This document shows positions 1 through 37,909 of a stretch of DNA of 64,000 nt, piece after piece. Source of the stretch: Podarcis bocagei (lineage: Eukaryota); NCBI GenBank assembly GCA_964188305.1, contig OZ076888.1; one strand, 5' to 3'. Each line of letters opens with the position of its first letter. The first letter of the stretch is position 1. The notes under the pieces were generated by a model. That model did no database searches and was not told the DNA's origin. It saw only the letters and a program-made list of their open reading frames with translations. Made by a program: the position numbers and the translations under genes.

Positions 1-1586
1 GGTGCTACTTTAGTTGTACGTTTATATTTCTCCATGTGAAAACATTCTTTAAAGAAACGTGTTTCAACTGATGCTTTGCACAACACTTAAAAGTGATGAA
101 AATGTAGAAGAAAAGGTGGACGTTGGGAAGAGGTTGGAAAGAGAGAGGTTCTCAAGGGAATCAACAAGATTTGAGGGATTACATCTCATGGTTAAAAATG
201 CCTCTGCAGAGATTTTTGCCTCTGGAGGCAAGAGCTAGCAAATTACATTTGCTGCATGGTCTGTAACCTGCATTGATTCATTCTCTAACGTGGGTCTGTA
301 AAGTCACATTATGAGCTGTGTGAGATTTGAATAATGTTTTGATGATCACATCTGTCTTTCTTTTATTTATTTTCCTTCCTCTGAGATTGATCAACAGGGG
401 TTGTTTTATACAATTAAAATTCCTGAGAAGTTATTACAGCAAAGCTTTCAATTACACATCTTCAATGTTTTGTTTTCAAGTGGCATGTAATTAACATACA
501 CTTTCTTATTAAATCAAAATATCATTATTCATTAGTAAGTATCTGGAGAAATCCTTATATACAAAGTGTAGCTTCTAGTTCTGTCCTCTGTTGCTATGCA
601 TTGATGTGTAAATATTTTATTAAATATGCACACATGTTCCTGAAACACTGAAAAGTAACACGGTGCTTAGAGTGAACCATCTGCTTGGTGCCTCTAATTT
701 TTAATAGGCAATTGTTAGGTAGATATGGATTTGATGTATCAACCATACTACAGTTTTGAAATTGCTTCATTCATAAAATAAATATTGCTTGCCAAAATCA
801 TTCAGCAAAATCTTATTCATGAAACAGCACAGCTAGCTATGCAAGACTTTTCATGAATAAGACAGAAACTTTGCCTGTCATAAAAATATTGAATTAGGCA
901 AGGATTTGCTTATTTCATGAATGAAGCTGAGAATGTGGTTAATTCATGTATTAGACAGAGCTATTCGGCTATATTATTTCATGAATAGAGCAAGTTCACT
1001 CATATATACAATGAATGGTCTTGAATAACTAAAAAGTGGAACAAAAAGCAGAATGGCTTTGTTTATGTAAGGGAGTATAAGTTTTCCAAGCCTTCAGTCT
1101 TAATCTAGTAACATTCTTAAAAAGAAATATGATAATAACTTGAGGTGTAAAAGTATACCATCGTTGATGGATACAATAAAAGAAGTATTCAATTTTAGTG
1201 TGTGATTAGCTAGCAGGAATTGTGATAGTTAAAAGTTTACCTATGGAGCAGTGTAGGTGGAGAGATAAAATATTAAGACCGAGAACTGAAATATAGCTGG
1301 AGCTTAATTGTGTGAAATGTTATCAATATAAGAATAATGAACTTGTGGTTGAACTGAATTTTCTGGATTGTGAATGACTACTGGAAGCATTCAGAAGGGA
1401 GGAAAGTCAAAAAGACATTCAGGTGAGGTCACCATTTAGTTATCAGTATTTTGCTCTTTTGGTTGTGTTTCCTTAGCACTCCAGTCTTCATCTTGGAAAT
1501 GGAGACATGTCTTGGTATCCTGATAATGTTGTTTTTTGTTAATTGCAGCCAGTAATTCTTCTTTTCTCCTCCCTCTCCCCACTTAG

Positions 1587-1737
1587 GACTTTCTCGGATT
1601 TTGAGAAGTCGACTGGAAATGACAAAGAACCGAGTTGTCGACTGGGCCTTGGGGGAATACATGGCTTTTGGGTCTTTGTTGAAGGAAGGTATCCATGTCC
1701 GACTAAGTGGGCAGGATGTAGAAAGGGGCACTTTCAG
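1587..1737 (+). CDS. OGDHL: 2-oxoglutarate dehydrogenase-like E1, internal exon ([51 protein letters not shown])
   Basis: ttag|GA acceptor, AG|gtgag donor, 151 bp; [13 protein letters not shown] motif of 2-oxoglutarate dehydrogenase E1; upstream exons lie outside the window. Confidence 0.95.
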
Positions 1738-2590
1738 GTGAGTTGTATAATACAGCTGCTGCTCATCCGGTAGAAAATGTCATACAGATTTTGCTGTGAG
1801 TTAATGCTAAACTGGGTCACTCTGAGGGATGGCTGTCTTGCCGTTTGTAACAGGTAATATGTTAAATGCTATAGGGGAATGTACATGTAATTGCATGAGG
1901 TAGTTGAGTATGAACATGAATTTGAATTAAGAAGTAATTGCAAAAGCTCAGGAAGAGGTGTTAGGGAGAGCTACTGCGATGGTGGAAGGAAAGAGATCAG
2001 GCAAAGAAAAACAGGTATATAAACAGCATAAAAGGGTAGGTGAACTAACTGGGGTGGGGACTCCCAAAACAGCACGCTGAGCATGCTGACTTGCTGCTTT
2101 GGTTTACATCAGAGTGGCCTAGAAGGGGGTCTTGTCATTGTAGCAGCCCATGACCTCCATATATGCTGCCCAGGCTTGTGTCCTGGAGAGATCACTCGGG
2201 TGCTACTAACACAGCAAAAACAACACGGGAGGCAGAGGTTAAGAGTTACCGGTCTCTGCAGCCACAGCAGGCGCTGTGATTCTCTGGAAGTTTGGCTTCA
2301 CCCCCGGAGGTGCTTTCCATTGTCTCTCGAGACAGACGGATGCCAACGACAACATGTTACAGGGTGAAAGATTCGAGTGGGAAGGAGAATGAAATTGAAC
2401 AGGAATGTGGAATAGGGACACTTCACACTGCAATCTTTTGTCGCGACAGGGCAGCACATAGCAATCACAAAATACAATCATAATCCTGCAGTAATTAAAA
2501 TTATTTGATTTTATATGATAGCAAACCTGTTTACTGAGAACTTAGATAGCCAAAACAGCACCATCCATACTGAAGACTGGATGTATCAGC

Positions 2591-2960
2591 TGTTGTAGGG
2601 GAGTTCTAAGATTTGCAGATGGGGGAGAACTTTGGGGAGGGGACTGAGATCAGGGAGAAACCCTAAACAGCTGGGAGGAGTATACTCAGTGACCACAGAA
2701 CCCTGAGTGTCTTTTTGTGGGAGGAGGGATAATAAAACTGGGGGAGGGGAAATAGAATGGAATGTCCAAACTATGGCATTGGTTGGCTGGAACCCATGAA
2801 CAAAGAGCACTTCATATGCTGCAATAGATCCCATTTGGACCCACTGAATTCTTTTCTCTTTCAGTTTGCTCGTGCAGGTTGGACGATATTTGACTTTTAG
2901 AGCCAATCTGTACATTATTTGGATCAATAATGACCTGTTAGACTGAAGTAAGCTACAACA
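2591..2960. mobile_element. Possible solo LTR
   Basis: Perfect 8-bp inverted termini TGTTGTAG...CTACAACA; no matching TSD seen. Confidence 0.3.
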
Positions 2961-4239
2961 CTTCAGATTGCAAATGGCAGATCGGGGACTACATATGGGA
3001 GAACGTGCTTTTTTTAATGGTTACCCACAAAGGAAGTCACTGAATGTGGCAGACTAGCTTATCCGAGTGAATGCTACAGTAAACCCTTTGGTGTGCTTGG
3101 TTTGGTGGGCAGGTTTTGGTTTTCAAAAATGGGGCTCGTGCAAAAAAACAGGACACCTCCGCTTGCTTCCGAAAACCATATGGTCTCGAATCCCACCATA
3201 TTTGCCTACTGTCTTTTGCTACACAATGTGTAAATCGTTTGCTAGAGGGGTTTTATGGGGAAACGGGTCAACAAAAATGGCCACCTCCATTGCACTTCTG
3301 TAGTTGTCACATTTTAACCTCCGGCATACCGTTGGTTTTACGATATTAACTAGTTTCTATTTAGAGTGGTGAACAGTTCTTGCTAAGATGCTTTAGAAGA
3401 ACAGAATTTCTGCTTGCAATTTGTTCAGCTTCGGCGGGCGTGCACTGCAGAATAGCTATTATCAGGGTAATAGCCCTTCTTCCTTTAGTGGTTGTAGAGC
3501 TTGAACATATTGGTGTGTTTCACTCAGTTAGTCTTGCTCAGGGAGTTAATGGATTACAGTAATTACTTCAGTCATCTCTGTTTTGATAATGTTCCTTGGT
3601 GCACCATTCTAATGCTGATTAATGGAGCTCTAGAGGGCACTAAGCAGTGAGCCGATGAAGGGTGGGCAGCGAGGACCGGAGGATGCAGCTCTTTCAAGAC
3701 TTGAACCTGAGAGTGTTCAAGGAGCTGAAAGCCGGTGCACAATACAGGCTGCACATGACTCAAGGCACGAGGAACAGAATTTCACAGCTAATTATAATTT
3801 GAGCGAAAGCAGCCCTGTTGTGTAATGGCTTCCACACTTCATATTTTATGGAGTGTAACTGCATGCCACTAAAAGCTTCATGCACCGCGCAGCAACAATT
3901 GCAAAGTTATCTGCAGCAGCGTCAGCCTGTTGTCAGAAGTGAATACTTGAGATATTGAAGAGCTTTAATTTAAAATAACAGTAACGGTTAATCCCTTGCG
4001 ACTGCCTAGATGCAGTGAACGGTAGCTTCCATATTGGAGGCCGCTGTTGATTTTTTTATAACTTTAGCCGTAGCTTTAATCTTTCCAAACATGTGGAAAA
4101 ATAATATGAGACTTTGTGTAATGGGAAAGGGTGTGAACTGAGAAATACCTGATTCAAATCTAAGCTCAGTCAGAAACTCACTTTGTGGCCTTGGACAAGC
4201 CATTATCTCCCAGTCTCTCTCTTTTTTAAGGGTTACTTT

Positions 4240-4938
4240 GTATTTATTTATTTATTTTAATATATATATAGTTATTAGATTTTCTGTTTTACAGTTTAGA
4301 ATATTCATTTAAACAACCTTAACGTATCAATGATTTCCCTTCTTCTCTTTCCGTGGTTCATTTTGCATAACATAAATCCCTGCATATTTTACATAAACTA
4401 AACCATTCAGTACAGTCATACCTTGGATCCCAAACGCCTTGCAAGTCGAACGTTTTGGCTCCTGAATGCCGCAAACCCAGAAGTGAGTGTTTCGGTTTGC
4501 AGATGTTCTTTGGAACCTGAACGTCCGACGGGGCTTCCATGGCTTCCAATTGGCTGCAGGAACTTCCTGCAGCCAATTAGAAGCTGTGCTTTGGTTTCCA
4601 AACATTTTGGAAGTCAAACGGACTTCCGGAACTGATTCCATTCAACTTCCAAGGTACAACTGTATTCCATTATCACATCCATCAAAACTTATGTACACTG
4701 TTGAATTTATTGAAAATGTTGCCGTTTTCAAATGTATGCAAAACTCCCCCCCCCATATATTCAGTAAACATTTTCCAGTCTTCTTATGTTCTTCTTGTTC
4801 TCTTATTCTATATGTTAGGTTTGCAAGCTGTGCATATTCCATGAGTTTAACTTGCCATTCTTCTTTAGTTGGGACCTCCCTTGCTTTCCATTTTGGGGCT
4901 AACACCATCTCCCAGTCTCAGTCCTCTGCCTGCAAATA
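4240..4938 (-). mobile_element. L1-type LINE 3' fragment, interrupted by a MITE
   Basis: ORF2 C-terminal-like peptide (APKWKAREVPTKEEWQVKLMEYAQLANLT) similar to the L1 pieces at 12.2-12.8, 24.1-25.1 and 42.1-42.9 kb; A-rich tail on the minus strand; boundaries approximate. Confidence 0.7.
4413..4662. mobile_element. Tc1/mariner (Tigger-like) MITE
   Basis: TA|CAGTCATACCTTGGA...TCCAAGGTACAACTG|TA; related copies near 34245-34480, 40099-40341, 48788-49329, 55376-55609. Confidence 0.8.
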
Positions 4939-5093
4939 GCTATAATATCGAGTTGCCTTGCTGGATGATAGTTGTAATAATTGCGAAGAACTCTGAACAT
5001 TCGAAAAGTGTTCTGTGCGTGCTGTTGCCACAGTTTCCTTTTCTAAAAATATCTTTTCTTAAAACGTCATTGTGTTTTTAAAAATCTTTGTAG

Positions 5094-5221
5094 CCATCGC
5101 CACCATGTGCTCCATGATCAAGATGTTGACAAGGGCACCTGTGTTCCTATGAATCATCTGTGGGAGCAGCAAGCCCCTTACACTGTATGCAATAGCTCCC
5201 TTTCAGAATATGGGGTCTTGG
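5094..5221 (+). CDS. OGDHL: OGDHL exon ([42 protein letters not shown])
   Basis: tgtag|C ... G|gtaag, 128 bp, phase continues the previous exon; [10 protein letters not shown] motif. Confidence 0.95.
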
Positions 5222-5470
5222 GTAAGTTTGGCAGTTTTTTATTGGATTACTTGAGTACCTTGAGATTATATAGAACAACATACCATACTTTTCCGTGTAT
5301 TAGACGAGGGTTTTTTTACTCTAAAATAAAGTTTAAAATGGGGGGGGGGGTTCGTCTTATACATTCTAAATAACAAGATGAAAGATGAAAAAATCTTTTT
5401 AAATAATTCCAGTGGCACCTTTAAGATCAACTAAATATAAGCTTTCAAGGTATGAGCTTTTGTGTGTAAT

Positions 5471-5695
5471 ATGAACTTAATTAGTTCTGGAGGTCCGTTC
5501 TTAACCTGAAACTGTTCTTAACCTGAAGCACCACTTTAGCTAATGGGGCCTCCTGCTGCCGCCGTGCCGCTGGAGCACAATTTCTGTTCTCATCCTGCAG
5601 CAAAGTTCTTAACCTGAGGTACTATTTCTGGGTTAGTGGAGTCTGTAACCCGAAGCGTCTGTAACCTGAAGCGTCTGTAACCCGAGGTACCACTA
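5471..5695. mobile_element. Truncated Tigger-like MITE nested in the Tc2-like element
   Basis: Right end CCCGAGGTACCACTATA resembles the GGTACCACTG|TA terminus of the other Tigger-like MITEs; internal TAACCTGAAG repeats. Confidence 0.6.
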
Positions 5696-5807
5696 TACAC
5701 TTCATCAGATACTCTGAAGCAGAGGTCGCTTCGACCTTATAACTGTTGATGACTGTTATGGCAGTTGGTTCCACAGGGAAGGGCAAGGGATTTTTAAAGG
5801 GATAGAT

Positions 5808-6452
5808 CAGTGTTTCCCAAACGTTTTTGGGCAACGGCACACCTGTTTACTGAAAAAAAATCTCGCGGCACACCACCATTAAAGCCCCGCCCCGTGACGT
5901 CAGCGCGCAGCGTCACGCCGGGAGGGACGCACGAAAGTGAAAGTTTTTCCCCTCCCCCTTGCCGGGGAACCTCCAAGCTTTGGGCAGGCAGGCAGGCAGG
6001 CAGAGCTGGGACGGGGGTTTCCAGGGGACACGGCAGCTCCTCGAAAGGCTTCTCTCGGCTGCGCTCAATCCTCCTCGGAGAGGATTTCCCCTCCGGTCCC
6101 ATGCGCTCATTTGGGGGAGCCCTCCGGCTGCTCCCTCTCCCGCCGCGCAGGAGCGATGCCTCTCTCTGGCTCTCCCTCCGCGCAGGCTGAGGGAGGGAGG
6201 GAGGGGCGCGTGTGACCCGTCTCTGCTGGGAGACCAAACCCAGCGAGGCAGAGTCGCGCGGAGGCGCCCAGGCAGCGCTGCCGGCTGCGAGGAGGAGCGC
6301 CAGGCAGCAGCAGGAGGCGCGGCCTCTCCTCGCCGCCGCCGCCCCGCCTCTCGCCGCCCGACTCGCCCGCCTCCCTCCAGGCATCTCGCGGCACACCAGC
6401 CGATGTCTCACGGCACACTCGTGTGCCGCGGAACACCGGTTGGGAAACACTG
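5808..6452. mobile_element. Young GC-rich hAT (Charlie-like) MITE
   Basis: TIRs CAGTGTTTCCCAA...TTGGGAAACACTG; perfect 8-bp TSD GGATAGAT (5800-5807, 6453-6460); CpGs undecayed. Confidence 0.92.
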
Positions 6453-8712
6453 GGATAGATGACCAAAATTGGCTTCAGTATGTATAATGGGACATGAATC
6501 CAATATCTCTGTTCAGACCAGGTCTCTCCATAGGTCTCTCCATGTCTTATACATGGATAGTGCAGAGGGGGGGCGGGTGATTGGTTGCAGCCACCAGCAG
6601 GATCTTGCGATTGGGTGGGTGAATGGTGTCTGCTGCAAGGGCTGCTTTTTATTGGCTGCTGCTTTGTCCAGTGGGTGGGTTATTTGCGGATGCGGCAAGG
6701 GCTGCTTTGGATTGGCTGCTGCTTTGTCAATTTGGTGTGTGTTGCTTGCGATTGTTAGTGTTTGTCAGTTGGGTGACAACTCTGGGCCATCCCACCCCAT
6801 GTTCTTTAATTTTAGTCCCCCAAAATAGGGAGCGTCTTATACATGGGGGCATCTTATAAACGAAAAAGTATGGTAGCTTCGCTTATTAGAGTCAGCAGTG
6901 CTTTGAGTGTATCCAAATCTATACACTTGGACCTTTGTCTTTATTTTTTAAAACTGTGACCTCACTTTTCGGATAAACAAGCAAATGGATGATTTTTGCC
7001 ATATGCTTGTCAATACTGGGCTCCACGCGCATTAAAACTCTTGAAATTTTTCATTCACTTTAGCCCGGGTTTCTTTATCATTGAAGGTTGGGGAAATGAG
7101 CTCTCTGCATTCCTTCTGATTGCAAGTCATTTTAAATAGTAATTAGAGAAGGACATTTGACTGCGAGGCAACGTTTTTGAGAATTACCACTTTGAAAGAG
7201 AGAGAAATTATTAATGTTCCAATATGCGTATAGACCAACAGCATCCGATCCAGAAATTCCTGCTTTGTTTTTCTAAATTCATCCCATCATAAACACAAGT
7301 AAGCACAACTCCAAAAAGAGAGAGAATAATTAAGCCCTGAACTTGAACTTCCATTTGCGTAAACAAGCAAAATGATTCTGTCATTTTAGGAATTCCCATT
7401 AGTGTCTTAGATTGCAGCTAATTAAGTAAAAATGAATTGAATAGCCCTGCATGATGAAGCTTCAAATTGTTTTTCTGGCAGGTGCACAAGCAGGGAGCTG
7501 GCACCTGTTCAGAGCTACGAGTCAGTGCTGAGTTATTATTGAACCACTAAAGAGCACCAAGTGTATAATAGTTCTACTAAAATGTTATTCTTGCTGGACT
7601 AATTTGCTACAGGGATAAATCCACTGCAGCCTAGATACTCTGCAATGTATAAGAGCATTTTTGGGAAAAGGAAGAATTATGTTAAAGATAATGGAGAAAA
7701 AACATCTTGTTTAGCTTGCATTCCTTCACTGTAAACTGGCTTCATCACTTATTTTGTAATTTTAATAATGGGGATTCTGTAGACAGTGCCAGCCTTGGAT
7801 TTTGCCAGTCATCAACTTGCCCATGCTAAATAGCAGCTGCTCCTGTTTAAACATATGTGGCAAACTGCCCAGGAAACATCCAGGTAATGCCACAAAAACA
7901 TAGCACAGCATTTTAGTTTTCTTCCCCATATTGAAAATGCAACCATTTTTTCCCTTCCGCGATTACTGTTAGAAAGAATCTTAGAACCTAATGGCAGTCA
8001 CCTCCTTATTGGTCTTCATTGAGAAATATAGGAGGAGATCCGTTTAGAAAAGTGAAGAAGACATTACAGTAAATTAAGTGCTACACTGCCATTTCAAAGC
8101 ACTTTGGGTGTTTTCTTATTTGTTTTAAATCCCAGCCTGAGAACCCTTGACTAATGACAAATCATGTTGCATTAAACTGCAGCTTAATTAATTTTAATTG
8201 AAAGACTCTTGCTCTTTCTGACAGTCACGCAACTTGCTGTCAGGGAGAAGGGGGAGAGATAGCATAATATGAAGTGCAAGCTGACGCTGCGTCTCAACAC
8301 CTCTGTCTGTCAGAGTGACACATGAAAACAAAGAGGAGAGGCACCAAAAATTGGGCTGATCGCTGTTTCCTCATCTGATGATTCTGTTATCTGAAGTTCT
8401 CCAGATAACAACATAATATTTGTACCATCATTGGACTCCACCTTTAGAGGTTTTCTACTAAAGAACACTTGCGCTTATAAAACCCCAAATTATTTTAATA
8501 AAGTGTACTCATCTGTTAGTTAAACCCATCATGATCCAAAAATGATTTCCTTCTTTATACACTATCAGTTCCTGTCCATACACACATGCCACCAATGTAT
8601 TGCTTCATCCTTAATGTCACCTCCCACCTGAAGGTCAAACTAAAATATGTTTGCTTTAGATTTTTGATTCGTGGGGTTCCAGCCCCTCTTTTTGGAATAA
8701 CTGAGTTGAGAC

Positions 8713-9073
8713 CAGGGCCGGATTTAAGTTTGATGAGGCCCTAAGCTACTCAAGGTAATGGTGCCCTTTATATGTCCAGCTGTCCTTTGACGACAACAAA
8801 TTGTCATTTTTGTGTGTGTGTTTTTGCGTTGAATATATGCTATATGGTAATTTATGGACCTAATAGGTATCTAAAGCCATTTGCACATAACAAATAGGAG
8901 CCTACACAACACAAAACACTGTTGCTGTACGTAGGTTTTATTTTATTTGTTTTTTATCTTATATTTTGGAAATGTACATCCAGGGTTTTTGTCCCCTTTA
9001 ATTTTTTGGGGGGCCCCAAGAGAGTGGGACCCTAAGCTATAGCTTGTTTAGCTTATACGTAAATCCAGCACTG
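8713..9073. mobile_element. hAT MITE
   Basis: CAGGGCCGGATTTA...TAAATCCAGCACTG; perfect 8-bp TSD GTTGAGAC. Confidence 0.88.
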
Positions 9074-10679
9074 GTTGAGACCAATTGCCACAAGTGACTT
9101 TCCACATGTGGAATTGTTTCTTAAAACTGTTCCTGTAAATAAAACCACCAGCACCTTACTAGTAAGGTCAAGGACACATTCCTGTATTGTGGAATTATTT
9201 ACGACTTGGGAGACCTGCCCTATCACTGGAAATCATAAGGGAGAAAGCAGCTGTTAGCCTGTCTTTTATGGTATTGCTTAATTTAGTGGTTTTTGACAGT
9301 GTGCTGTTATAGTAGAGTTAGGAGAAAGGAATTAATGTATTGTCAGTTTGAAGACACAGTATAAATCTACAGGGCAATCTTTAAGATTAACCAGAATATA
9401 AGTATTGAAATCTTTCATCCTATGTGTACTTTAGTAGGATCTTTGGCTGAGATTAAACTGAGTTTCCATTTTTATCTTGACAAAGCCTGATTTCTCTATT
9501 CTAATATAGTAGCATGTGTGTGAATAAGGATTGAACAAATGAGCCATCTTGGGTGTTTCCTCATCCATGTCACCCAATCTGTAGAAAAAGTCTTTGAATG
9601 CTTGTTTAAAAATAGAATTGGACTAAAACCTATCCAGGAAAGCCTATTTAGCTTCTCCCTTTATTTAAAGAATACCTTCGGGAACTTGCAAGAAGAGTTG
9701 CAAAAGATTTTCACTATTTCAGCAGATGATGACACAGCATGACAATTAGGATGGTTTTTTATTTTTTTAAAAAATAAATTTGTCTTGCTGGAAATGAGTA
9801 TTAATAGCTTGAAAGAGTATGAATCTCTGTCAGAGAATCAGTAGTACAGACACCTTGAATGAAAGGTTAGAAAGCTAGTATGTCGTGCTTTCTAACTTTT
9901 TGGCAGAGGGAAACATAGAAACGTGTTTACAGATGGGTTCTTCATGGAGTTCAGCACTACAGAAACCAAAGCAATTTATTGACATACCTTCATCAAGATC
10001 TGGCTGAATGTCTTGAATACAATTAGCATCAGGATAGCACATAAAAATTCACATCCTCTGCAAATGAAGTCTGTTTGTGCATTCATGGATGGACATTATA
10101 AGTGCCACATTCCTGCACATATTTAGACTATTCAGCATATTTGCCTGGCATCAGGAATGTTACTCTGGGTTGCAAAGTTGTCATTTTGCCCTCGTTCGCA
10201 GCCTCTTCTGATAGACATCTAGCACAGGACTGAGGGAAACCTCCAACCTGAGGGTGGGATGCACCTCCAACTTTTAATTAATTTCTGTTCCAGGAATTTT
10301 GAGAGACCCCTTGAACATTGAGGTTGGTGGGTAAAGCAGTTTGTCAAGGCCAAGCCAGTGTAAAAGGCAAGGACTTGTTCCAGTAGTGTCTAGGAGGAAG
10401 TTGAACAGTGCTGTTGAAGAAGGCAGCTCTGGACCAAGAATGGCCTTGGGGGAAAACAGAGGGAAAATGGAGAAGAGGTTGAGAAGCCACCATTTTTGTA
10501 GGCGTGAAAGAGCAAATTCTGAGCCAAGAGGCCAAAAGTATGCAGAGCTGGCAGTGTTAGACAGTGGCTCAACCATCCCATTACCTCCCATGTGGTGCTA
10601 TGACAGTCACCATCGACTGGGAGTTCTGCTTGCTCCACCCATCATGAGGTCAGGCAGTCATCATCATCATCATCATTTA

Positions 10680-10882
10680 TTATTTATACCCTGCCCATCT
10701 GGCTGGGTTTCCAACAAAAGATTAAAAATACATGAAAACATCAGTCATTAAAAACTTCCCTATACAGGGCTGCCTTCAGATGTCTTCTAAACGTCAGATA
10801 GTTGTTAATTTCTTTGACATCTGATGGGAGGGCGTTCCACAGGGGGGCACCACTACTGAGAAGGCCCTCTGCCTGGTTCCCA
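10680..10882 (-). mobile_element. L2-clade LINE 3' fragment
   Basis: Reverse complement of the RQRAFSVV...FRRHLKAAL.REVFN 3' end shared with the copies at 32.6, 35.4, 37.3 and 60.0 kb. Confidence 0.8.
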
Positions 10883-12167
10883 GATTTAATAAAGAAATAA
10901 TGTAAAGATAATAAAAGTGGCAGGACATGAAAGAAAAATGGAGAGTTAGCAAGGCTCTCTTCATGTCAGCAACAATCAAAGGTTTCTGTCTCCGTCCTGG
11001 AAGAACCTTCCCTATCCCCATTTCAATACCTGTAATGAAAACTCACACTGCATGCTGTGATCCTACATACACTTCCTCGGGAACAAGTCCCATTTCAATG
11101 CCATCTTATTACTTCTGTGTCAACGTGCACTGAGTTAGGCAGAGAAATGGCAATCCTAACCTAGTTTACCTGGAACTAAATGTTACTACTATAAACGTTT
11201 GTGTTGGGGGGACAGCTTACCTGCTAGAGCCCAATAACCAGCACTGCCTGATCATTCAATAGTGTTAGGGATCGTCTCATTTTTATTTTAAAGTCTCAGT
11301 TCTGTCCCCCTAGGTACAGTGGGATTGCATCTTATCCAAGGGTTAGATTCTGGGCAGAGTGCGGATACGCAAAGTTGCTTATAGTCCAGGAGCCTTAGAC
11401 TCCTTAGATTGCTGCTTTCCAGCCCAGCTGGGACACTAGACTGCCACCTCTCTCTTTCTCCCTTTGGTAACTCTAAATGTTTGCTGTGGGGCTGACTCAG
11501 ACCACACTTTCCCTGCCGTCAGCTTCTTGCCCAGAGAGCAACCGCAACGCATGTTGGGATTGGCAGTGCCTTTCTCTACTGAACAGGCAGCTTCCTTCCA
11601 GTGAGTGAGCCAAAGCCAGCTAAGCTGGGAGAACGGAAACTTTCCCCAGTCACCCAGAGGCCGCAGTGTTTGACCAACGCCAAGCGGGGCAGCCACAAAA
11701 CCTCTGCTGCCATACACATGCTTCAACCTCTAGCTCTGGGACTGTGGAGGAGCAGGGAGAAGGAAGAGGTGATGGGTGTGAGGCAGGGGAAGAGAAGCCA
11801 CGCCAAGTGCTTACCCAAGTTTGCTTTCTCCTCCCCCTGCCATCCTTCCTTCCCCACCCTCCACAAATACCCTGAAATCCCAAGGAAAAGCCCCCTCCAA
11901 GGAGATGCTGGTGGGGCACCACTGTTCTCGTGGCTCCACCCACTTCTCCCCTGCACTTGGGGATATTCCTTGCAGAGAAGTGACAATGAACACCACTTAA
12001 AGGAGAGCTTTCTTCCTTGGCTCTTTGCTTTCGAAGGGTCTTTTCCCCCAATAAACGCAGACGCTGCAGCCAAGAGTGTAAAGCAGAATCTGTGTAAGTC
12101 AAATGTGTCCAAGATGCAATCTTATTTTATGGTGTATCTGTTTATTTACTGTATTCAGACTAGATAT

Positions 12168-12822
12168 TTTTTTTAAAAAAATAATTTTTACAAGTATAAA
12201 AATATGACAATACAATCATACACCTTAATATTTAAAGATTCCTCCAAATCTCTGTACTTCCCACCTTCCCTGCCATGGGTCCTATTGTCAACCCTTTCAA
12301 CTGCTTATTATTCAGTAGTCCATATTTTATATCACTGCATTGTGTCCATAGTATTTGCTACATTGCAAGTGTTACTGCAATCCTGCTAACGTTTTCATCT
12401 GCTTACAGTGGTCTCCAAGATAAATTATAAAATTTCCCCACTCTTTGTTAAAGTTTTGGTCTTCTTGGTCCCTGAGCTTCCCGGTCAGTTTTGCCATTTT
12501 GGCATAATCAACAGTTTAATTTGCCATTCTTCTCTGGTAGGGACTTTGTCTTCTTTCCAACTCTGGGCTAGCAACATCCGTGCTGCTGTCATCATGTACA
12601 TAAAAAGTCTTTTCTGCTCCTTTGGAATGTCAGCACCCACAATTCCTAGTAGAAAAGCCTGTTTTTTAAAAAAATAAAAGTTAGTTTGAACATTTTTTTC
12701 AACTCATTATATATAATTTCTAAGAATGCTTTTATTACCATACAAGACCACAACATATGATGCAAGGTGCCTTCTTTTTCTTTACATTTCCAGCAGATAT
12801 TTGTACCTGTCTTATGCAAACT
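12168..12822 (-). mobile_element. L1-type LINE 3' fragment
   Basis: CWKCKEKEGTLHHMLWSC (CCHC zinc knuckle of ORF2), frameshifted, A-rich tail; boundaries approximate. Confidence 0.8.
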
Positions 12823-15603
12823 AGATTTTTTTTGAAGCCTACAATCCACTTAATAAAGACAATTAGTGGAATACTTGTGTGTGGCCCAGGATTGATTTTT
12901 TCTTCTGTAGAACAGTGGTGCTTGATGGGGGGGGAGACACCCCCCCTTGATGTAGGGCAGTAACCGTATGCATTTGAGTGGATTTTGCAGAAATCTACAG
13001 GTACCAAATACACATTTTAATTATGATGAATATGGCTGCAACGTTATAATGTCAGTGGACCTCCTTGTTGTCAAGCTTGCGTTGCCCATATTGATATACA
13101 TTCTGTGAAATAAAACAGACCTCAGATTCCCACAGGCGCATTACCCTTGGCTACATTCTGCAGTCCCCACAGTATAAATCACAAATGACAAGTACATGAG
13201 ACCTGTCAGTGACTGCTTGCTGGTGGGTTTGAAGTGGTAGCCTACTGTGTGCAGAGCATATCAAGAGCCAAGTTGCCCTCCTTTGGTCAGCAGGAGTTTC
13301 AGAGTTCACAAAACTTTCCTAATTAAAGGTAAGAATGCAAATTCTTATCACAGCTAGAAATGGAGTCTAGAGACTTCATTCTGTGCTTATTAATAACTTC
13401 TCCCTAGGTTGCCTCATATATTTGCAAATGGTACTCTTGGGAGTAAAATTACTCCAGCTACCTGAACATAGTAAATTTGACAGATAATGGATTGCATAGA
13501 TAATTGCAATTGTAATTAATTTGGGTTTTGAGTGTCGTCATCGTTTTATTTGTATGTCGCTTTTCCGCAAAGAGAATCATGCTCAAAGCGGCTTACCACA
13601 AAGGAATCAGTAAAACATCTCAAAATCAACCATCACTAGAACGATTTCATAATAACTAGAAATGTTTCAGCACTATAAATATAACAAGATTACATTAATA
13701 ACATTACACCTCCTGGTGGTAGCCAGAATAACACCTTGGTTCTATAAGTCCCTCTCAGTCCCTCCCTGAATCTGCTTCTTATAAGGCTTTCAAAGGCAGA
13801 GGGTCAGGTACTGAGAAGCCCCTTTGCCATGATGTTGCTCGTGAATAGACCCTTAGATACAGAGTTTTGAGTAGATTGTTAGATTCTGAATTGTCAGTTT
13901 TCAAAGTGTTTTCCATAATTATAGATCATGTTCCCCAGTTTGTAGTTTTGTTTTGTTTTTGAAATACAGAAATCACAAATGAACACTTAGATTTAGGACA
14001 ACTCAAAACATCACACTTGTTGAAAATAACACTGAAGTTTCCTGCAGCACATAAGTAGTTATTTAAAAATATGTAATATGCGCAGCCGCCCTAACCTCTG
14101 TTTCACTATTGGCTAACTACTGTCTTTTCCGTTCAGTATCGTGGTATCCTTTTCACAATCTGTGCTTTTCTCTTTCTTGTATTCTCCTGATGAGAAATTT
14201 CCTTGATGGATTCCCATCTGTAAGACAGGTCCAAGCAGCTACTGCCTTCTAGTAGTGTGACTATGTGGAACTCTCTTTTCTTCACTCAATTCCATATGAA
14301 GCGCCAATAAGGAGTTCAGGGTTTGAGTTAGTGCAAATTCAATATTCTGGAGAACATCCAATACCTTATGGTTATTTGCAAACAGTTCCCTGCTTTATTT
14401 TTACCATAGACTCAAAAGCAGCACCTTAAACTTTGTACTGGACTAGCCATACAGCAGGGGTCCCCAACGTTTTTGAGCCTGTGTGCACAATTAGAAATCT
14501 AAAACCATTGTAGATACCCCAAGGGACTCGTTTCACAGAGTGGAAATTGGTGATGCTCATAATCTTCCTCCAGACGAAACACGTACACCCATCCCCAAAA
14601 ACATACGGACAAAAAACAGGCAACACCCACCAGAAAAAGGCAGCTGCCTCACAAAAAAAAGACAAAACCATTAATCAGCATAAATTGGAAGGAACAGGAA
14701 GCCTCAAGGGACACAGGGTGAAGGGTTCCAGCCCTTTAGCAAACCTTTATGAAAGTTTGATACTTTAGAATGTGCAAAGAAGGTTTCATTTATAATTTCC
14801 AAATCTGCCCAGTCTCCCCTTCTCTCTTAAGTTTTCGCAGCACTTAAATTGTAAGATTTTTTTTTTTCATTTTCTGTGCAGCAGAGAATTTAAAAAATGA
14901 ATTGTGTATTGCTTTGTAACGATTTGTTGGGTCTCTGGACCGTAATAAAGGTTGATTGATTGATTGATTGATTGAATTTTATAAAAGGACCATACAGATA
15001 AATACAACATGTTTCAGAGCACAGCCTCATCAGATGATTATTTTTTTTTTTTAAAAAGAATATATCTAAATGTTTACTTTAAACAGTGTATTTTTTTATT
15101 GTTGTTGAAAGGGACAATCTTGTTTTAAGCGCTATGTATTAACAGTGCGCCTAACTGCAACTCTGCTTGTCCTCCTCTTCCTGAAATGCTTTGGCGGTTT
15201 GGATAGGAGCAGGTAATGGGATATATTCAGAGAAATTATCTGGGAGATCAGGGAACCTCAACCCAACACCTTTCCTGCTAGAAACTGCATAGGGCAATAT
15301 TATTGAATCCTATTCTTGAGTTATCTTATGTACCAGTGCTGTTGTGGCATCGGCACCCACCATTACTTGAGTGCATACCTCACATTCAGGAAGAGATCAA
15401 GAATTGCCATTCTTAACAATCCTGGAAGCAAGCAGTCAAGAATGAATATTGCTTTTGCCAGCTGACTGGCCGCACAGCTGGTGATGGTTTTTAACCTCTC
15501 TTGAGAACAGAGATTCATATGACATGCTGGGTACCCATTCAGTAAGGTGGCATTTGCACATATTAATCCGTGGATTAGATCTAAAAAGCCTCAAGGTGTA
15601 AAA

Positions 15604-16122
15604 TAGGGTTGCCAGATTTCAAAAAGTGAAAATCTGGACACAAACGTTGTTGAGCTTTTTGCTTTGCCCAAAGTTTTTGAGTGATTTTAAAGGAAATTCA
15701 CCAAAATCTACACTCCCAACATGGGTTGCCATATGTCTGGAGTTTCCTGGACATTTCAGCGATTTCCCCCCAGAAGCTGTTTCCAGCTGCCAAGTCCCAT
15801 CTGGCAAATTACAGACGTATAAAAAGGTAAAGGGATCCCTGACCATTAGGTTCAGTCGTAACCGACTCTGGGGCTGTGGCGCTCATCTTGCTTTATTCGC
15901 CGATGGAGCCAGCGTACAGCTTCCGGGTCATGTCAGTACCTATTTATCTACTTCCACTTTGATGTCTTTTGAACTGCTAGGTTGGCAGGAGCAGGGACCG
16001 AGCAACGGGAGCTCACCCTGTCGCGGGGATTTGAACCGTCGACGTTCCGATCGGCAAGCCCTAGGCTCTGTGGTTTAACCCACAGCGCCACCCACGTCCC
16101 ATACAGACGTATAGCAGCCCTA
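15604..16122. mobile_element. hAT (Blackjack-like) MITE hosting a SINE
   Basis: TAGGGTTGCCA...TAGCAGCCCTA termini; an uninterrupted relative in opposite orientation lies at ~36413-36680. Confidence 0.65.
15822..16101 (-). mobile_element. Sauria SINE (internally deleted)
   Basis: tRNA-like head GGGACGTGGGTGGCGCTGTGGGTTAAACC...GGTTCAAATCCC, ACCTTT tail, 12-bp TSD TACAGACGTATA. Confidence 0.88.
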
Positions 16123-17300
16123 TAAACATATCTTCTTTGAGAGCAGGACTGTTTCTGCTTATAGAACTGTGGGGTTTTTTATCCATTTGAATGGATTGCA
16201 TGCCCCAACCAGAAACTGCCTTTTTCCAGATTCCTTAAGCGTATGTGATTTGCCTCAGTAGCTTCACACGAGAGTCTCCTACAGGGTGCAATGCATTTCT
16301 AGATATCATACCGGGAAATAATCGACCATTCTGCTCACTTGACATGAGTCCATCTGATGTATGTTGATGATCATGGCATCATTTAAAGTTGCTGCAGGAA
16401 TATTTGTCCTCATGCCAATCCAATGACCAATTTAAATGCAAATGATCTTGGGAAAGGGGGTAAAATGAGGGGCAAAAGGGGGAGGAGGCATTTTGTCTAA
16501 CAGGCACTATTAGCTGGAAGCAGTGAAATGAATAAATAAGACCCTGGAGTCAAGGTGGGTCATTAAAAGAGAAACTAGGTTAATATTATATTTAATTATG
16601 TTTCTATGAACTCTCTGGCTCTGCTTGAAATCTCGTATTTTGAAACAGCACAACAAAGCAGCATTGTGATTGCAGCTGTTAAAGCAATTTACCGTCAATC
16701 TGCCTTAGCTGAGTTGCTGGGCAAGAACTATGATACTTTAGATTTTAGTAAATTCCTGTCCCATTATTTAAGGCCCTAATTCCTACCACGGAAGTAAAAT
16801 TTTACTATATGGTCGTTCAGAACACATACAAACTACACAGAGGGGAAAATTTTACTCGCTTCCTACGAGAATCCCACATAAGATTCCAGACGGACCCAAT
16901 TGTGTTGCTGTATGTCAGATTTTAGGAAATATTGCAACATCACTGTGCTGTAAGCTATAACATGTTAAGTATAATGGAAGTGCCACAGCGTATCTTGCCA
17001 CAACCACTCCACATTTTTGAAATGCTACCCAAGCCATTCTGGTATTTGCTTTTTTATTGCAGAATATGGTTTACTTAGGCCTCATTTTTTCCTTTTCATT
17101 AGTCATTTGTGATGGTTCAGAAGACTGAGATACACAAAGTTGTATTGAATCAGTTTTTGACATAGATGTTTTGTATATTCGTATATACTGAAAGTGTCTA
17201 ATTCTTGGATGCATAAGAGGCATAGTCCTAATTTACTTCATTCTGTAATGCCATTCTGTAATTCAGCTTCAGGATTTATTCCCAATACATTTTGTCATAA

Positions 17301-17971
<671 letters not shown>

Positions 17972-18106
17972 TAGATATCTCTAATATTTATTTAAATAAG
18001 AAGAAGGAATTGCTTTTTACAGATGTGTATCAGTGGCTATTTCCCGAAGAACAAATGTGTCATGATTGAAAGAGAGAATAGCCCCCCAAAATGAATATAG
18101 TGGTTA

Positions 18107-18489
18107 CGTAAAGGTAAAAGGAGCTGTGGTCTAAACCACTGAGCCCCTTGGGCTTGCCAATCAGAAGGTCAGCGATTTGAATCCCCATGATGGGGTGAGC
18201 TCCTGTTGCTCTGCCCCAGCTCCTGCCAACCTAGCAGTTTGAAAGCACTCCAGTGCAAGTAGATAAATAAGTACCGGTGTGGTGGGAAGGTAAATGGCAT
18301 TTCCGCGCACTCTGGTTTCCGTCACGGTGTCCCGTTGCACCAGAAGCGGTTTAGTCATGCTGGCCACATGACCCGGAAAGCTGTCTGTGGACAAATGCCG
18401 GCTCCATCAGCCTGAAAGCAAGATGAGCACCGTAACCCCATAGTCGCCTTTGACTGGACTTAACCGTCTGGGGTCCTTTACCTTTTACC
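18107..18489 (+). mobile_element. Sauria SINE
   Basis: Homologous to the 56465-56826 copy; tail CCTTTACCTTTTACC; 9-bp TSD TAGTGGTTA. Confidence 0.85.
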
Positions 18490-18792
18490 TAGTGGTTAAT
18501 CCTGGGCATTTGTACTTGGAAATAAATTCCACTGCATTCAATGAGTTTCATCATCTGAGGAATAGTGTGCACTTATAAGGTGCTTCATTTATACAATAAA
18601 CATGTTATAGTCAGCCACCTATTAAACCTATGTCAGAGAGGGCGGTTATAAAGGCCACACACAACCACTTCTATCAAACCAACTAAATTCACATCATCCT
18701 GCCCAGTATGGAAATTAATGACAATTATGTTTAGGATCTAGATTCTTCCAAGGCATGCCAACTTGTTTTTCTTTACATGATGTGATTCTCAG

Positions 18793-18864
18793 GGCCCAGA
18801 GCATTCTTCAGCCAGGCCAGAGAGATTCCTTCAGATGTGTAATGATGATCCTGATGCCTTTCCA
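18793..18864 (+). CDS. OGDHL: OGDHL exon ([24 protein letters not shown])
   Basis: ctcag|GGC ... CCA|gtaag, 72 bp; GPEHSSAR motif. Confidence 0.95.
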
Positions 18865-18868
18865 GTAA

Positions 18869-18870
<2 letters not shown>

Positions 18871-18900
<30 letters not shown>
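18871..18900. repeat. (TA)n microsatellite
   Basis: About 15 TA units starting 6 nt after an OGDHL donor. Confidence 0.95.
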
Positions 18901-18903
<3 letters not shown>

Positions 18904-19034
18904 CTTCCTACCCAGTCATCTCTCTTCAGGCACCACCTCTAATAATATTAACATTCACATTCACATCAACATCATCATCAGCAACAACAACAACATTTAT
19001 TTATTTATACATACATACATACATACATACATAC

Positions 19035-19230
19035 ATACCCTGCCCATCTGGCTGGGATTCCACAGCCACTTTGGGTGGGTCCCAGCAGAATATTAAAAAC
19101 ATGATAAAACATCAAACATTAAAAACTTCCCTAAACAAGGCTGCCTTCAGATGTCTTCTAAAAGTCAGTTAGTTGTTTATTTCCTTGACATCTGATGGGA
19201 GGGCGTTCCACAGGGTGGGTGCTAGTACTG
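19035..19230 (-). mobile_element. L2-clade LINE 3' fragment abutting the duplicated C10orf53 exon
   Basis: Same 3' end as the other L2 copies, preceded by a (CATA)n tract. Confidence 0.8.
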
Positions 19231-19251
19231 AGAATATTATTATTATTAATC

Positions 19252-19591
19252 TCATTCCCACCCCATTTTCCTTCAGCATGGGACATGTCTGGCAGGCTAC
19301 GTCACACACTTTGTAAGCCCTGCAGACGGAAAGTCCTGTGTTCAACAATGCCGCAGCTCCTGTAGGCCCCGTATCTGAGAGTTACCAGTGCATTCCTTGG
19401 CATTGCTGGACCACGTTGCAGCCCTTGCTGGGAGGGTCCAAAACAAATAGGGGGGAAGGCTGTTTCAGGACAGAAACAGTTGTGGACACTTTCCTTCCTC
19501 TGCTGGAGACTGTGGAGTAGCCTGCTGCTGCTGCCCCTGCTGCCTAAGCTGTGTCTGTTGTGTCATTCACTGCCTACTGTTGTGTCATTCA
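19252..19591 (-). pseudogene. Duplicated C10orf53 exon 1 with flanks inside an OGDHL intron (coding-like part 19403-19310: MPRNALVTLRYGAYRSCGIVEHRTFRLQGLQ)
   Basis: Aligns without gaps to 37852-38191 (offset 18600); 23 mismatches in 340 bp by hand count; no copies of exons 2 or 3 seen downstream in the window. Confidence 0.85.
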
Positions 19592-19792
19592 CCACTACTA
19601 TGGTTAAACCAAGTCATGTGTACATTCAGTGTAGCACAGCTGCAGGATGACTGGGGAGAAGCAAATCTGCCACATTCTCCTTCCAGAGTCTACATATTCA
19701 CAAATTCACACCAAGCCATTATTTGGCTTAGCAAGATGTGCAAACCAGGCTATTGGTTTCCTTTCTAATGCCCATAATCTGCCTTTGTTCAG

Positions 19793-19918
19793 GAATTTGA
19801 TGATGATTTTGCAGTTTCCCAACTCTATGAATGCAACTGGATTGTGGTGAACTGTTCAACTCCAGCCAGTTACTTCCATGTCCTCCGAAGGCAGCTCTTG
19901 TTGCCATTTAGGAAACCT
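19793..19918 (+). CDS. OGDHL: OGDHL exon ([42 protein letters not shown])
   Basis: ttcag|GAA ... CCT|gtaag, 126 bp. Confidence 0.95.
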
Positions 19919-32305: not shown

Positions 32306-32370
32306 TCAGTAAGCGTTTAACACTGCATGTCTAGCTTCTTGGCAAAGTGGGTCCAACAGGCCATCGCCTC
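32306..32370 (-). CDS. C10orf53: C10orf53 exon 3 (GGDGLLDPLCQEARHAVLNAY*)
   Basis: (ct)n-cag|GA acceptor, TGA stop; spliced CDS 279 nt = 92 aa; conserved DPLC..AR.AVLNAY terminus; AATAAA on the minus strand at 32262-32257. Confidence 0.9.
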
Positions 32371-32559
32371 CTGAGAGAGAGAGAGATGGACAATGTTAAA
32401 ACATAAATAGGTCATTGGAGGTTTCCCCCCACCTCTTAAAAAGGACACTGCTGTTCATGGCTTCAGGAAGCCTGGAAAAGTTTTGCAATGCTATTCAAGC
32501 CTCTTGATTGGTGTGTGTGTTGATTTCCCTCTGCTGTACCATATAACGCTAGAATTCCT

Positions 32560-32890
32560 CAGCCCAGTATATCTGAAGGAGCATCTCCACTCCCATTGTT
32601 CAGCCCAGACACCGAGGTCCCGCTCCGAGGGCCTTCTGGCAGTTCCCTCCCTGCGAGAAGTGAGGTTACAGGCAACCAGGCAGAGGGCCTTCTCGGTAGT
32701 GGCGCCCACCCTGTGGAATGCCCTTCCATCAGATGTCAAGGAAATAAACAACTCTCTGACTTTTAGAAAACATCTGAAGACAGCCCTGTTTAGGGAAGTT
32801 TTTAATGTTTGATGTTTTATTGTGCTTCTAATATTCTGTTGGGAGCTGCCCAGAGTGGCCGGGAAACCCAGCCATATGGGCGGGGTACAA
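32560..32890 (+). mobile_element. L2-clade LINE 3' fragment
   Basis: YLKEHL...RQRAFSVVAPTLWNALP...FRKHLKTALFREVFNV. Confidence 0.85.
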
Positions 32891-32907
32891 GTAATGAATT
32901 CTTCTAA

Positions 32908-33001
32908 TTCTTCTTCTTCTTCTTCTTCTTCTTCTTCTTCTTCTTCTTCTTCTTCTTCTTCTTCTTCTTCTTCTTCTTCTTCTTCTTCTTCTTCTTCTTC
33001 C
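32908..33001. repeat. (TTC)n microsatellite
   Basis: About 31 units. Confidence 0.95.
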
Positions 33002-33634: not shown

Positions 33635-33754
33635 CGAAATCCAGATCGTTAATGTTGCACTGAAACACAGTCTCTCCATTTACTATGAGCTGCACTTCAT
33701 TCCAATCTGGTATTTCTTCAAGGATTACCTGGTGTCCATCGGCTTTCAGCACAG
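33635..33754 (-). CDS. C10orf53: C10orf53 exon 2 (AVLKADGHQVILEEIPDWNEVQLIVNGETVFQCNINDLDF)
   Basis: ctgtag|CT ... G|gtgggt, 120 bp, phase 1-1. Confidence 0.9.
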
Positions 33755-34599
33755 CTACAGAAAGGCAGTAGGTAGGTAATGTTGCTAAAATACAATGCTA
33801 TTGACAACCAGATTCAGATAAGAAATGGAGAATACTGCTGGTTTGTAGTACTTCTTGTTACTTTAAGGGGTGCGTCATCCGAGTAAGCAGCTGAATTTCT
33901 TAAAGACACTTAAGATTTATATCAAGACAGCTAAGAATAATATCGTGCATTCATTTGGGAGGAATATGCATTAATACGGTTTAAAAATAGGAGGAGCAAT
34001 ACCGAGTCGGATGCTGAAGTTTCGTCATGTGTTCTCTGAGTCTGTAGCAGGAAAGCAACAAACATGGTTTCAGAGTCAAGGGTAGGGTACGAGGGTTTGA
34101 TATAAGGCAAAAAAGATGGTTTAAGGAGTGAAAGTTACTTTAGACATTTTGGCTAATCCGACTATACATCATCTAAAACATTTTGAGAGAGGGAGAACCT
34201 GGCATATCAGGACCTTCTCACAGAAAGAGGTTTGCTTACTTTGCAAGTTGAGTGGAATCTGTTCTGGAAGTCCATTCAGCTTCCAAAACATTTGAAAACC
34301 AAAGCGCGGCTTCTGATTGGCTGCAGGAAGCTCCTGCAGCCAATCGGAAGCTGTGGAAGCCCCATCAGATGTTCGGCTTCCAAAAAAAGTTTGAAAACCA
34401 GAACAATCACTTCTGGGTGTCAATCGTTCGAGAGCCAAAACGTTCGAGAACTAGGCTGTTCAATTTCCAAGGTCCAACAGTACCTTGGTAGGTGGGCACC
34501 AGAATGTTATGGAGAACGGCATTTGACAAAATGAACATGCGGGCTCAAGGAATATGGATTGCAGCAGACTTCATATCCCTTTACAAGCATTGTCACAAA

Positions 34600-35990
34600 C
34601 ACTTATTTCAAAACTGGGTTTAGGCCCACGTTCGGCACTGAAGTAGCCTTCATCACCCTGTTGACCTCTTGTGGGAGAAAGCATAGCCTCCGGCATTTCT
34701 CTGATTAAAATAGGGGTGTCCTATTCAAAAACAACAATTTTACTATTCATACCCCACCTATCTGACTGGGTTGGTTATATTTATATCCAACAAATATAAA
34801 AACGTAAGGGGGAAAAAAATAAACATTAAAAAAAATTCCCTATACAGGGCTGCTGCCTTCAGATGTCTCTAGGGCTGGATAATGCCATACCCTCCAATAT
34901 TTCTACAATGAAAATAGGGACACCCTAAGGAAAAGCAGGACATTCCAGAGTCAAATCAGAAACTGGAGCTGCTTCTGTGCATCCAGGACTGTCCCTGGAA
35001 AACAGGGGCACTTCGAGGGTCTGAGAAAGATGATGTTTCACTAAAGCAGTGGATCCTATCAACCATGGTATCTCACTGGTTTTATAGATTGAGAGTAGGA
35101 GTAAGAACAGTGATAAGCTGGTTCTGCTTCTGCTTACAGGGCCGCTTTTAGAAGACAGCACTGGAGGCGAGATTGCTTGATTCCATGGCAGTTGTGCTGT
35201 GGAGTCCTGTAAGGTTCTATCTTATCTCCCATGCTTCTAAACACCTATATGAATCCTCTGGTTAAGGTCATCGGGGAATGTGGAGTGAGATGCCATCAAT
35301 ATTCTGGTGACATATAATAATATTATAATAATTTATTATTTATACCCCACCCATCTGGCTGGGCTTCCCCAGCCACTCTGGGCGGCTTCCAAAAAATGTT
35401 AAAATACTGTGATACATCAAGCATTAAAAGCTTCCCTAAACAGGGCTGCCTTCAGATGTCTTCTAAAAGTCTGTTGTTGTTGTTCTATTTGACATCAGGT
35501 GGGAGGGCACCACTACCGAGAAGGCCCTCTGCCTGGTTCCCTGTAACTTGGCTTCTTGAAGTGAGGGAACTGCCAGAAGGCCCTCGGTGCTGGACCTCAG
35601 TGTCCGGGTAGAACGATGGAGGTGGAGACGCTCCTTCAGATATACTGGACCGAGGCCGTTTAGGGCTGTAAAGGTCAGCACCAACACTTTGAATTGTGCT
35701 CGGAAACATACTGGGAGCCAATGTAGGTCTTTCCAGACTGGTGTTATATGGTCTCGGCGGCCTCTCCCAGTCACCAGTCTGGCTGCCGTGTTCTGGATTA
35801 GTGTTCTGGATTAGAACACTGTGTTGTTCTCCTGCTCCTTGGGTTCAGAGACAGGCGATGCTGTGTCAGTACTGAATTTGTGTCTGGACTTGGCAAGGGT
35901 TTGGAAGAAGACCAATAAACTGAAGTTGAATTCTAATAAGATGGAGGCCCTATAGGTAGATGGTTCTCATGCCTGGGAATTAAGTGTAAA
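34600..35990 (+). mobile_element. Old degenerate L2-type RT fragment interrupted by younger elements
   Basis: Decayed motifs resembling GFRP..GTE.A (~34615) and GVPQGSILSPML.N.YM.PL..VI...GVRCHQY.DD (~35195-35312). Confidence 0.55.
35335..35800 (-). mobile_element. L2-clade LINE 3' fragment
   Basis: RDHITPV..DLHWLPVCFRAQFKVLVLTF.ALNGLGPVYLKERL peptide. Confidence 0.88.
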
Positions 35991-36680: not shown

Positions 36681-36987
36681 CTCCGGTGTGCAAAAAAAGA
36701 GTGAGAGACTCAAAGTTGTTCTACTCCCCGTACTATGAAAACTTCTCTTCTGTCCCTTCACAAATGTAGCTTGGGTTGCCAACTAAGCTCATTTGCCCTT
36801 AGCTAGAGGAGGATGTGAAACTAGAAAAAGCCCAGCTATAGAAAAGAAGGGCATCCATGGTTTAATAACAACAAAAGCAAAATGAAAGTCGAAATCATAG
36901 AATTGCAGAGTTGTGTTTTTATATTGTAAACTGCCCTGTGATCTTCGGATGAAGGGCAGTATAGAAATTTAATAAAGAAAATAAAGA

Positions 36988-37045
<58 letters not shown>
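36988..37045. repeat. (AAT)n microsatellite
   Basis: Direct reading; probably a LINE tail. Confidence 0.95.
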
Positions 37046-37049
37046 TATT

Positions 37050-37275
37050 TCTACCCTGCCCATCTGGCTGGGTTTCCCCAGCCACTCTGGGTGACTTTCA
37101 ACAGAACATTAAAAACAGAATAAAACTTCAAACAATAAAAACTTCCCTAAACAGGGCTGCCTTCAGATGTCTTCTAAAAGTTGGATAGTTGTTCATTTCC
37201 TTGACATCTCATGGGAGGACGTTCCACAGGGTGGGTGTCACTACTAAGCAGGCCCTCTCCCTGGTTCCCTGTAAC
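37050..37275 (-). mobile_element. L2 3' fragment, head-to-head with the next copy
   Basis: Reverse complement of ~37590-37815. Confidence 0.82.
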
Positions 37276-37840: not shown

Positions 37841-37909
37841 TACCATCATCATCATTCCCACCCCATTTTCCTTCAGCATGGGACATGTCTGGCAGGCTAC
37901 GTCACAAAC

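Follow-up and report, generated by a model that had tools for sequence, protein, structure and literature searches.

A short duplicate of the first coding exon of C10orf53 lies antisense in an OGDHL intron of the wall lizard Podarcis bocagei

The window analyzed here, a 64,000-nucleotide stretch of the Podarcis bocagei genome (assembly GCA_964188305.1, contig OZ076888.1), contained two closely similar versions of one short segment, the first inside an intron of one gene and the second at the start of another. This raised the question of which version was the original, how the other came to lie where it does, and whether it has any role. The version at 19.2–19.6 kb is called copy A below, and the version at 37.9–38.2 kb is called the parent; all coordinates are positions in the window, in which runs of N were absent.

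Positions 19252–19591 and 37852–38191, exactly 18,600 apart and in the same orientation, could be aligned without gaps; of the 340 bp, 23 differed (19 transitions and 4 transversions; K2P 0.072). The blastn match had an E-value of 1.6e-148, and gapped extension carried it to 19235–19604 and 37829–38204 at 90.7% identity, the gaps falling in an ATT/ATC microsatellite. The duplicated piece measured 350–370 bp and ran from the leader through the first coding exon into the beginning of intron 1. Read on the minus strand, copy A (19235–19604) consisted of about 200 bp copied from upstream of the ATG, which in the parent is 5′ UTR and/or proximal promoter sequence (19404–19604; 14 mismatches in 188 bp), an open frame of 31 codons starting with the ATG at 19403 and followed by the split-codon base 19310 (19310–19403, 94 nt), a retained GT splice donor (19308–19309) preceded by the polymorphic base 19310, and some 56 nt from parent intron 1, beginning directly after the donor (19252–19307; one mismatch). 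An AT-rich microsatellite (19235–19251) and a short patchy end (19592–19604) formed the edges outside the ungapped core. Only two copies of the segment were present in the 64 kb, and a sensitive self-comparison of 16–23 kb against 34–42 kb showed that nothing was shared except the 370-bp segment and copies of a SINE-like element. The alignment, offset, mismatch count, coding differences and intron size given in a first-pass annotation of this DNA were all reproduced.

Two small features of the segment were also observed. A 16-nt direct repeat, CTGTTGTGTCATTCAC, occurred twice, 6 nt apart, in the leader of both copies (19555–19592 and 38155–38192); its units in copy A were at 19555–19570 and 19577–19592 and adjoined a CTG-rich run. 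The right end of copy A showed five consecutive mismatches (19592–19596, CCACT, against 38192–38196, TTGGA), after which eight bases matched. A change of several nucleotides at once or a patchy junction may account for this run.

Both copies displayed, on the minus strand, an ATG (19403 and 38003), 31 codons, a GT donor and a stop two codons into the intron, so that the features the first-pass annotation had read in copy A (ATG, 31-codon frame and donor) were all found again. The coding differences comprised K3R, S18G and V19I together with four synonymous changes, and the donor read CAA A/gtgtgt in copy A and CAA G/gtttgt in the parent. The copy A peptide matched positions 1–31 of the 88 in the Pfam family UPF0728 (PF15092) with an E-value of 1.2e-11 and 44.7 bits (cut-off 27), and the peptide of parent exon 1 matched the same positions with an E-value of about 1e-11. 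The parent peptide also matched the PDB chain 9d2f_V, "UPF0728 protein C10orf53 homolog" (E = 3.5e-07). Chain V of 9D2F is a subunit of 10 kDa in the stalk of radial spoke 3 of mouse motile cilia (10.1101/2025.05.19.654877). Residues 1–31 of copy A resembled both the family profile and the mouse protein. The full UPF0728 domain, of about 88 profile positions in three coding exons, was not present in copy A, which held exon 1 only and encoded 31 of about 93 residues, roughly a third of the protein; the complete gene was the parent copy. Exact-product look-ups returned no record for either of the 33-residue ORFs. Two matches with repeated LVTLRYGAY motifs (P0008 and P0011) were considered as parallels for exon duplication and set aside, since they look unrelated.

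The segment at 37829–38204 (minus strand) contained the upstream or 5′ UTR sequence, exon 1 (coding part 37910–38003) and the start of intron 1 of an intact C10orf53 homologue. A tblastn search with the UPF0728 proteins that the parent peptide had retrieved located exon 2 at 33635–33754 (33636–33755 in the tblastn match) and the coding part of exon 3, which ends in a stop, at 32309–32371, both on the minus strand and each in a single copy in the window. These two exons had proper splice signals and an open frame, and the reading frame of the parent was checked by joining exons 1 and 2. The copy at 37.9–38.0 kb, which is continued by exon 2 at 33.7 kb and exon 3 at 32.3 kb, was on that ground identified as the true first exon. 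Relative to its source, copy A was displaced 18.6 kb downstream, which places it some 12.7 kb past the last exon of the parent. The same search over 1–19251 found no match to exons 2 or 3, the only matches being those at 33.7 and 32.3 kb beside the parent; this bore out the earlier statement that no copies of these exons follow further down the minus strand. Likewise, the profile match and the absence of partner exons agreed with the description of copy A as a second version of the C10orf53/UPF0728 first coding exon, with an orphan exon as one alternative. As the parent has the sole exons 2 and 3, and a snake has a single exon 1 (see below), the segment at 37.9–38.2 kb was taken as the parent and that at 19.2–19.6 kb as a derived, lineage-specific copy. 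At codon 18 (37950–37952) the parent encodes Ser, and the snake, most retrieved relatives and copy A encode Gly (SCG to SCS). The derived state of this codon sits in the functional parent and not in the orphan copy.

The exons on both sides of copy A (18793–18864 and 19793–19918, plus strand) translated to 2-oxoglutarate dehydrogenase E1 sequence, and the second corresponded to residues 688–725 of the OGDH chain 7wgr_A (E = 4e-18 against OGDH chains). The host intron therefore spans 928 bp, of which the core of copy A fills 37% on the minus strand; it had been described as filling more than a third, in antisense. We take the host gene to be OGDHL rather than OGDH from the order CHAT-C10orf53-OGDHL, as in human 10q11. 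The closest relative retrieved was C10orf53 of the snake Crotalus tigris, the locus of which (L001) was colinear with the window: CHAT (Carn_acyltransf), C10orf53 (UPF0728) and a convergent OGDH-family gene. The snake locus had one exon 1 only, and a search of the orthologous OGDHL intron (L001 26873–28569) found no copy of it. The lizard and snake host introns did not align outside the exons, so the snake indicates the absence of an exon-1 copy and does not provide the sequence of an empty site. Copy A is specific to a wall-lizard lineage, being absent from a snake and present in several closely related species labels.

The coding sequence of C. tigris C10orf53 begins 123 nt upstream of the homologous ATG, in the same exon. 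Accordingly, the ~190 bp upstream of the ATG, which the first-pass annotation had pointed out and which is indeed present in copy A, may be 5′ UTR rather than promoter. In addition, isoform X2 of the snake gene was annotated with a last exon of 13 codons at L001:54800–54838 (plus strand), about 36.8 kb past exon 3. This exon lies deep inside the convergent OGDHL, so the annotated snake C10orf53 overlaps OGDHL in antisense for more than 30 kb. An exact-product look-up of C. tigris isoform X2 returned no record.

Four sequencing runs were mapped to 19100–19792, the OGDHL exons being left out. In run X1 (DNA, organism A), the left junction was crossed by a 204-nt contig over 19195–19395 and the right one by a contig of 1984 nt that included 19550–19792. 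The right junction was also bridged by a 1965-nt contig of run X5, from organism B with a second species label. Run X1 departed from the reference at several sites, which indicated that it represents an independent sample. Unique depth was about 9–16 in X1 and 49–94 in X5, compared with 1e5–1e6 on the SINE-like element; the depth over copy A fits one or two copies per genome, not dozens. In each of fourteen runs from organisms A–E, 57% or more of the sampled words were present; no more than about one-tenth of these words could be shared with the parent, and copy A is common to several closely related species labels. The junction-spanning contigs and the depth thus showed that the segment is neither an assembly artefact, a concern raised at the first reading, nor a multi-copy element. 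Both X1 and X5 had parent-like bases at 19310, 19383, 19441 and 19518, indicating that four or more of the 23 differences are either polymorphic or of recent origin on the reference lineage. At 19310 the minus-strand base was A in the reference and the parent-like G in X1. A further change in run X1, 19318 C>A, produces Gly29Val within the LQGLQ motif, at a Gly that all retrieved relatives share.

Copy A was joined at 19234/19235 to a 5′-truncated SINE-like retroelement (19036–19234, minus strand) in the same orientation as the duplicate, followed by the microsatellite 3′ tail of that element (18953–19035, minus strand; (ACAT)n and GAT/GTT-type runs on the plus strand). Its body was truncated at GAGAA, where other members of the family go on GGCCCTCTGCC. 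Family members ended in GGGTATAAATAATAAAT and then passed into a variable microsatellite. At least eight copies were present in the window (10680–10884, 19036–19234, 32557–32963, 35314–35801, 36975–37276, 37336–37856, 56957–57098, and 60027–60224), with a shared 3′ end (…CCAGCCAGATGGGC.GGGTATAAATAAT…) and varying 5′ ends, and the microsatellite after each copy differed, consisting of ATT, CTT, ATG, or ATGT units. The member in parent intron 1 (37336–37856, plus strand) had an ATT/ATC tail that formed the left edge of the duplicated segment. Reads of this family were abundant in the RNA run X24. Neither a tRNA head nor an Rfam family was found for the element at 19036–19234. APOBEC-like hypermutation at its end was considered and dropped, there being about three differences in the last 15 nt relative to the window copies.

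How the segment reached the OGDHL intron was approached through its junctions. We favored, with moderate confidence, a short templated insertion at the DNA level, in which a repair or replication template switch onto the nearby donor would have taken place at an AT-rich microsatellite, and the abutting SINE-like element would be a separate insertion at the AT-rich site; it is plausible that the AT-rich edge served as a target for such an independent insertion. The donor lay on the same strand at a distance of only 18.6 kb, and no poly-A was present. A nearby donor on the same strand is typical of DNA-templated insertions. No convincing target-site duplication was found around the SINE-like element and the duplicate together: the best candidate, ACCCAGTCAT / ACCAAGTCAT, was a 10-mer with one mismatch, was reached in 9.6% of shuffles, and was separated from the tail of the element by non-repetitive sequence. 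By comparison, a 12-mer matching at 10 of 12 positions flanked the SINE-like element alone, but it lay in low-complexity sequence, which counts against the DNA-level route. So does the exact fusion of copy A to the end of a 5′-truncated, co-oriented element, which fits an RNA route better than two independent events. The motif CCCAGTCATC was seen near the edges of the SINE-like element and the duplicate (18908–18920, 19608–19617, and 19646–19658), once direct, once as a near copy and once inverted, each at chance level alone.

Orphan fragments left by small dispersed duplications are alike in that a few hundred base pairs come from a donor tens of kilobases away on the same chromosome and strand, in their non-coding and intron content, in the lack of poly-A and of partner exons, and in their neutral-looking divergence. 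Copy A differs from them in that precisely a gene's 5′ end was captured, with leader, ATG exon and donor, and in lying antisense in the intron of a convergent neighbor, directly against the end of a retroelement.

A chimeric retrocopy is a possible but rather doubtful explanation. Here, the SINE-like RNA would have been undergoing target-primed reverse transcription at the OGDHL intron when the reverse transcriptase, still short of the 5′ end of this template, switched to a nascent unspliced C10orf53 transcript of the adjacent gene and copied it from intron 1 to the 5′ end. If this was so, the right edge (19604/38204) would mark the transcription start of the parent and copy A would hold no promoter, a proposal to be held just as tentatively. 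The order on the minus strand (duplicate, truncated body, tail), with both parts co-oriented and no spacer at their joint, matches the architecture described for LINE-mediated chimeras (10.1101/2025.02.02.635956). Given the position of the snake coding start in the same exon, 123 nt before the ATG, the duplicate would hold only transcribable sequence. The element diverged by 7.1% from a rough consensus, which is compatible with the age of the duplicate and does not separate the scenarios of origin. Moreover, snake isoform X2 indicates that transcripts of C10orf53 can extend antisense across OGDHL, so the source RNA would be locally available. However, the composite is without a convincing target-site duplication, the better candidate flanks the SINE-like element alone, and no clear microhomology was seen at the junction. 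Retrocopies normally land genome-wide, so that insertion as close as 18.6 kb to the source would further require the RNA to have been still tethered nearby; the scenario also rests on a putative transcription start of the parent. In U6/L1 and mRNA/L1 chimeras, which arise by template switching or RNA ligation (10.1101/2025.02.02.635956; PMC2104539; PMC4476161), the 5′ cellular-RNA part is likewise fused, in the same orientation, to a 5′-truncated retroelement with its own tail. Here, in contrast, a SINE-like squamate repeat ending in a microsatellite takes the place of L1 and poly-A, the part of cellular origin retains intron sequence and comes from a source 18.6 kb away, and a flanking target-site duplication was not found.

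Two other RNA routes were rejected. Copy A kept the donor and about 60–80 bp of intron 1 and was therefore not a spliced retrocopy, as had already been argued from the retained intron sequence; the 3′ end on the minus strand was the ATT-type microsatellite shared with the parent and not a poly-A. Transduction of 3′ sequence from the retroelement in parent intron 1 was judged unlikely from general knowledge of SINE and LINE transcription: the right end of copy A bore no new tail, and a T-run lay past the tail of the element.

With regard to function, copy A is real and is probably a neutrally drifting orphan pseudo-exon of C10orf53, a DNA duplicate most likely without function. Its existence, structure and two-copy state were observed directly, and its neutrality is what we infer to be most likely from the comparisons that follow. 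At 8.5%, divergence of the exon was not below that of the upstream part (7.4%), which means that coding sequence was no better kept. The pairwise dN/dS was 0.20 (3 non-synonymous and 4 synonymous changes; borderline, Fisher p = 0.052), a value that mixes the branch of the copy with that of the constrained parent under a 19:4 transition bias. When the changes were polarized by the snake, the branch of copy A received K3R, V19I and 2–3 synonymous changes (two fixed), and the parent branch received G18S and one synonymous change. In simulations, the ATG, the open frame and the GT all survived 5–8 neutral substitutions with P = 0.52–0.66. Counted against the neutral reading were the lack of indels in the 340-bp core, the association of the parent family with cilia, and the fact that only ~12% of one RNA run was covered. 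From a divergence of 5.6–7.2% and an assumed squamate neutral rate, the duplication may be put roughly at tens of millions of years.

The first-pass annotation had also proposed an antisense transcription unit or micropeptide overlapping OGDHL, in which the promoter of copy A would fire on the minus strand within OGDHL and yield a non-coding RNA or a peptide of 31–33 residues, possibly spliced. The proposal drew on the intact ATG, frame and donor, and it gains from the stronger G before the donor in X1, the family-typical Gly18 that copy A keeps and the parent has lost, and the pairwise dN/dS of 0.20. In run X15, which is RNA only by guess, a 192-nt contig (19336–19525) carried copy-A-specific bases and lay wholly within the would-be exon, with the neighboring intron uncovered; this is ambiguous, and would mean local transcription if X15 is truly RNA. 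Nevertheless, depth was zero over 19244–19792 in the RNA-seq run X24 (raw bulk reads of one run, about 12% of it read, tissue unknown), intactness was expected by chance about half the time, and Gly29Val was polymorphic. Furthermore, exons 2 and 3 do not follow downstream, 31 residues make up only about a third of the UPF0728 domain, and the ORF of copy A had no product on record. We consequently regard a working antisense unit as improbable, and the proposal was not upheld. It would be equally surprising if copy A fired in ciliated or germ cells to give a young antisense transcript or a 31–33-residue N-terminal fragment of the radial-spoke-3 stalk; if it did, the antisense product could modulate OGDHL or spoke assembly, and an intermediate of gene birth would have been caught early.

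The segment is short and repeats abut it on the left, but an assembly artefact or a Pack-type transposon carrying a captured exon is very improbable in view of the X1 and X5 contigs across the junctions, the depth of one or two copies, the mere two copies in the 64-kb window, and the lack of terminal inverted repeats at 19235/19604, where the sole long-range pair (13 nt, 18908/19646) was at chance level and had no matching flanks.

Returning to the reading of a neutral duplicate, copy A looks like an ordinary orphan gene fragment of a known kind, among the small gene-fragment duplicates and orphan first exons. As it stands, it is one more small duplicate and matters little in itself. Its value is that source and copy lie in one window with junctions confirmed in independent samples, which makes it a case for sub-kilobase copying between neighboring squamate genes. 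For annotators, neither a second C10orf53 start nor an antisense gene of OGDHL should be placed here without RNA evidence.

Elsewhere in the window, an AT-rich non-coding block at 39591–39745 showed about 75–82% identity to L001 8135–8281 of the snake. It lay ~1.6 kb upstream of C10orf53 exon 1, between that exon and the last CHAT exons, and had no match in Rfam. This block could be an element of the CHAT 3′ UTR or a conserved regulatory element.
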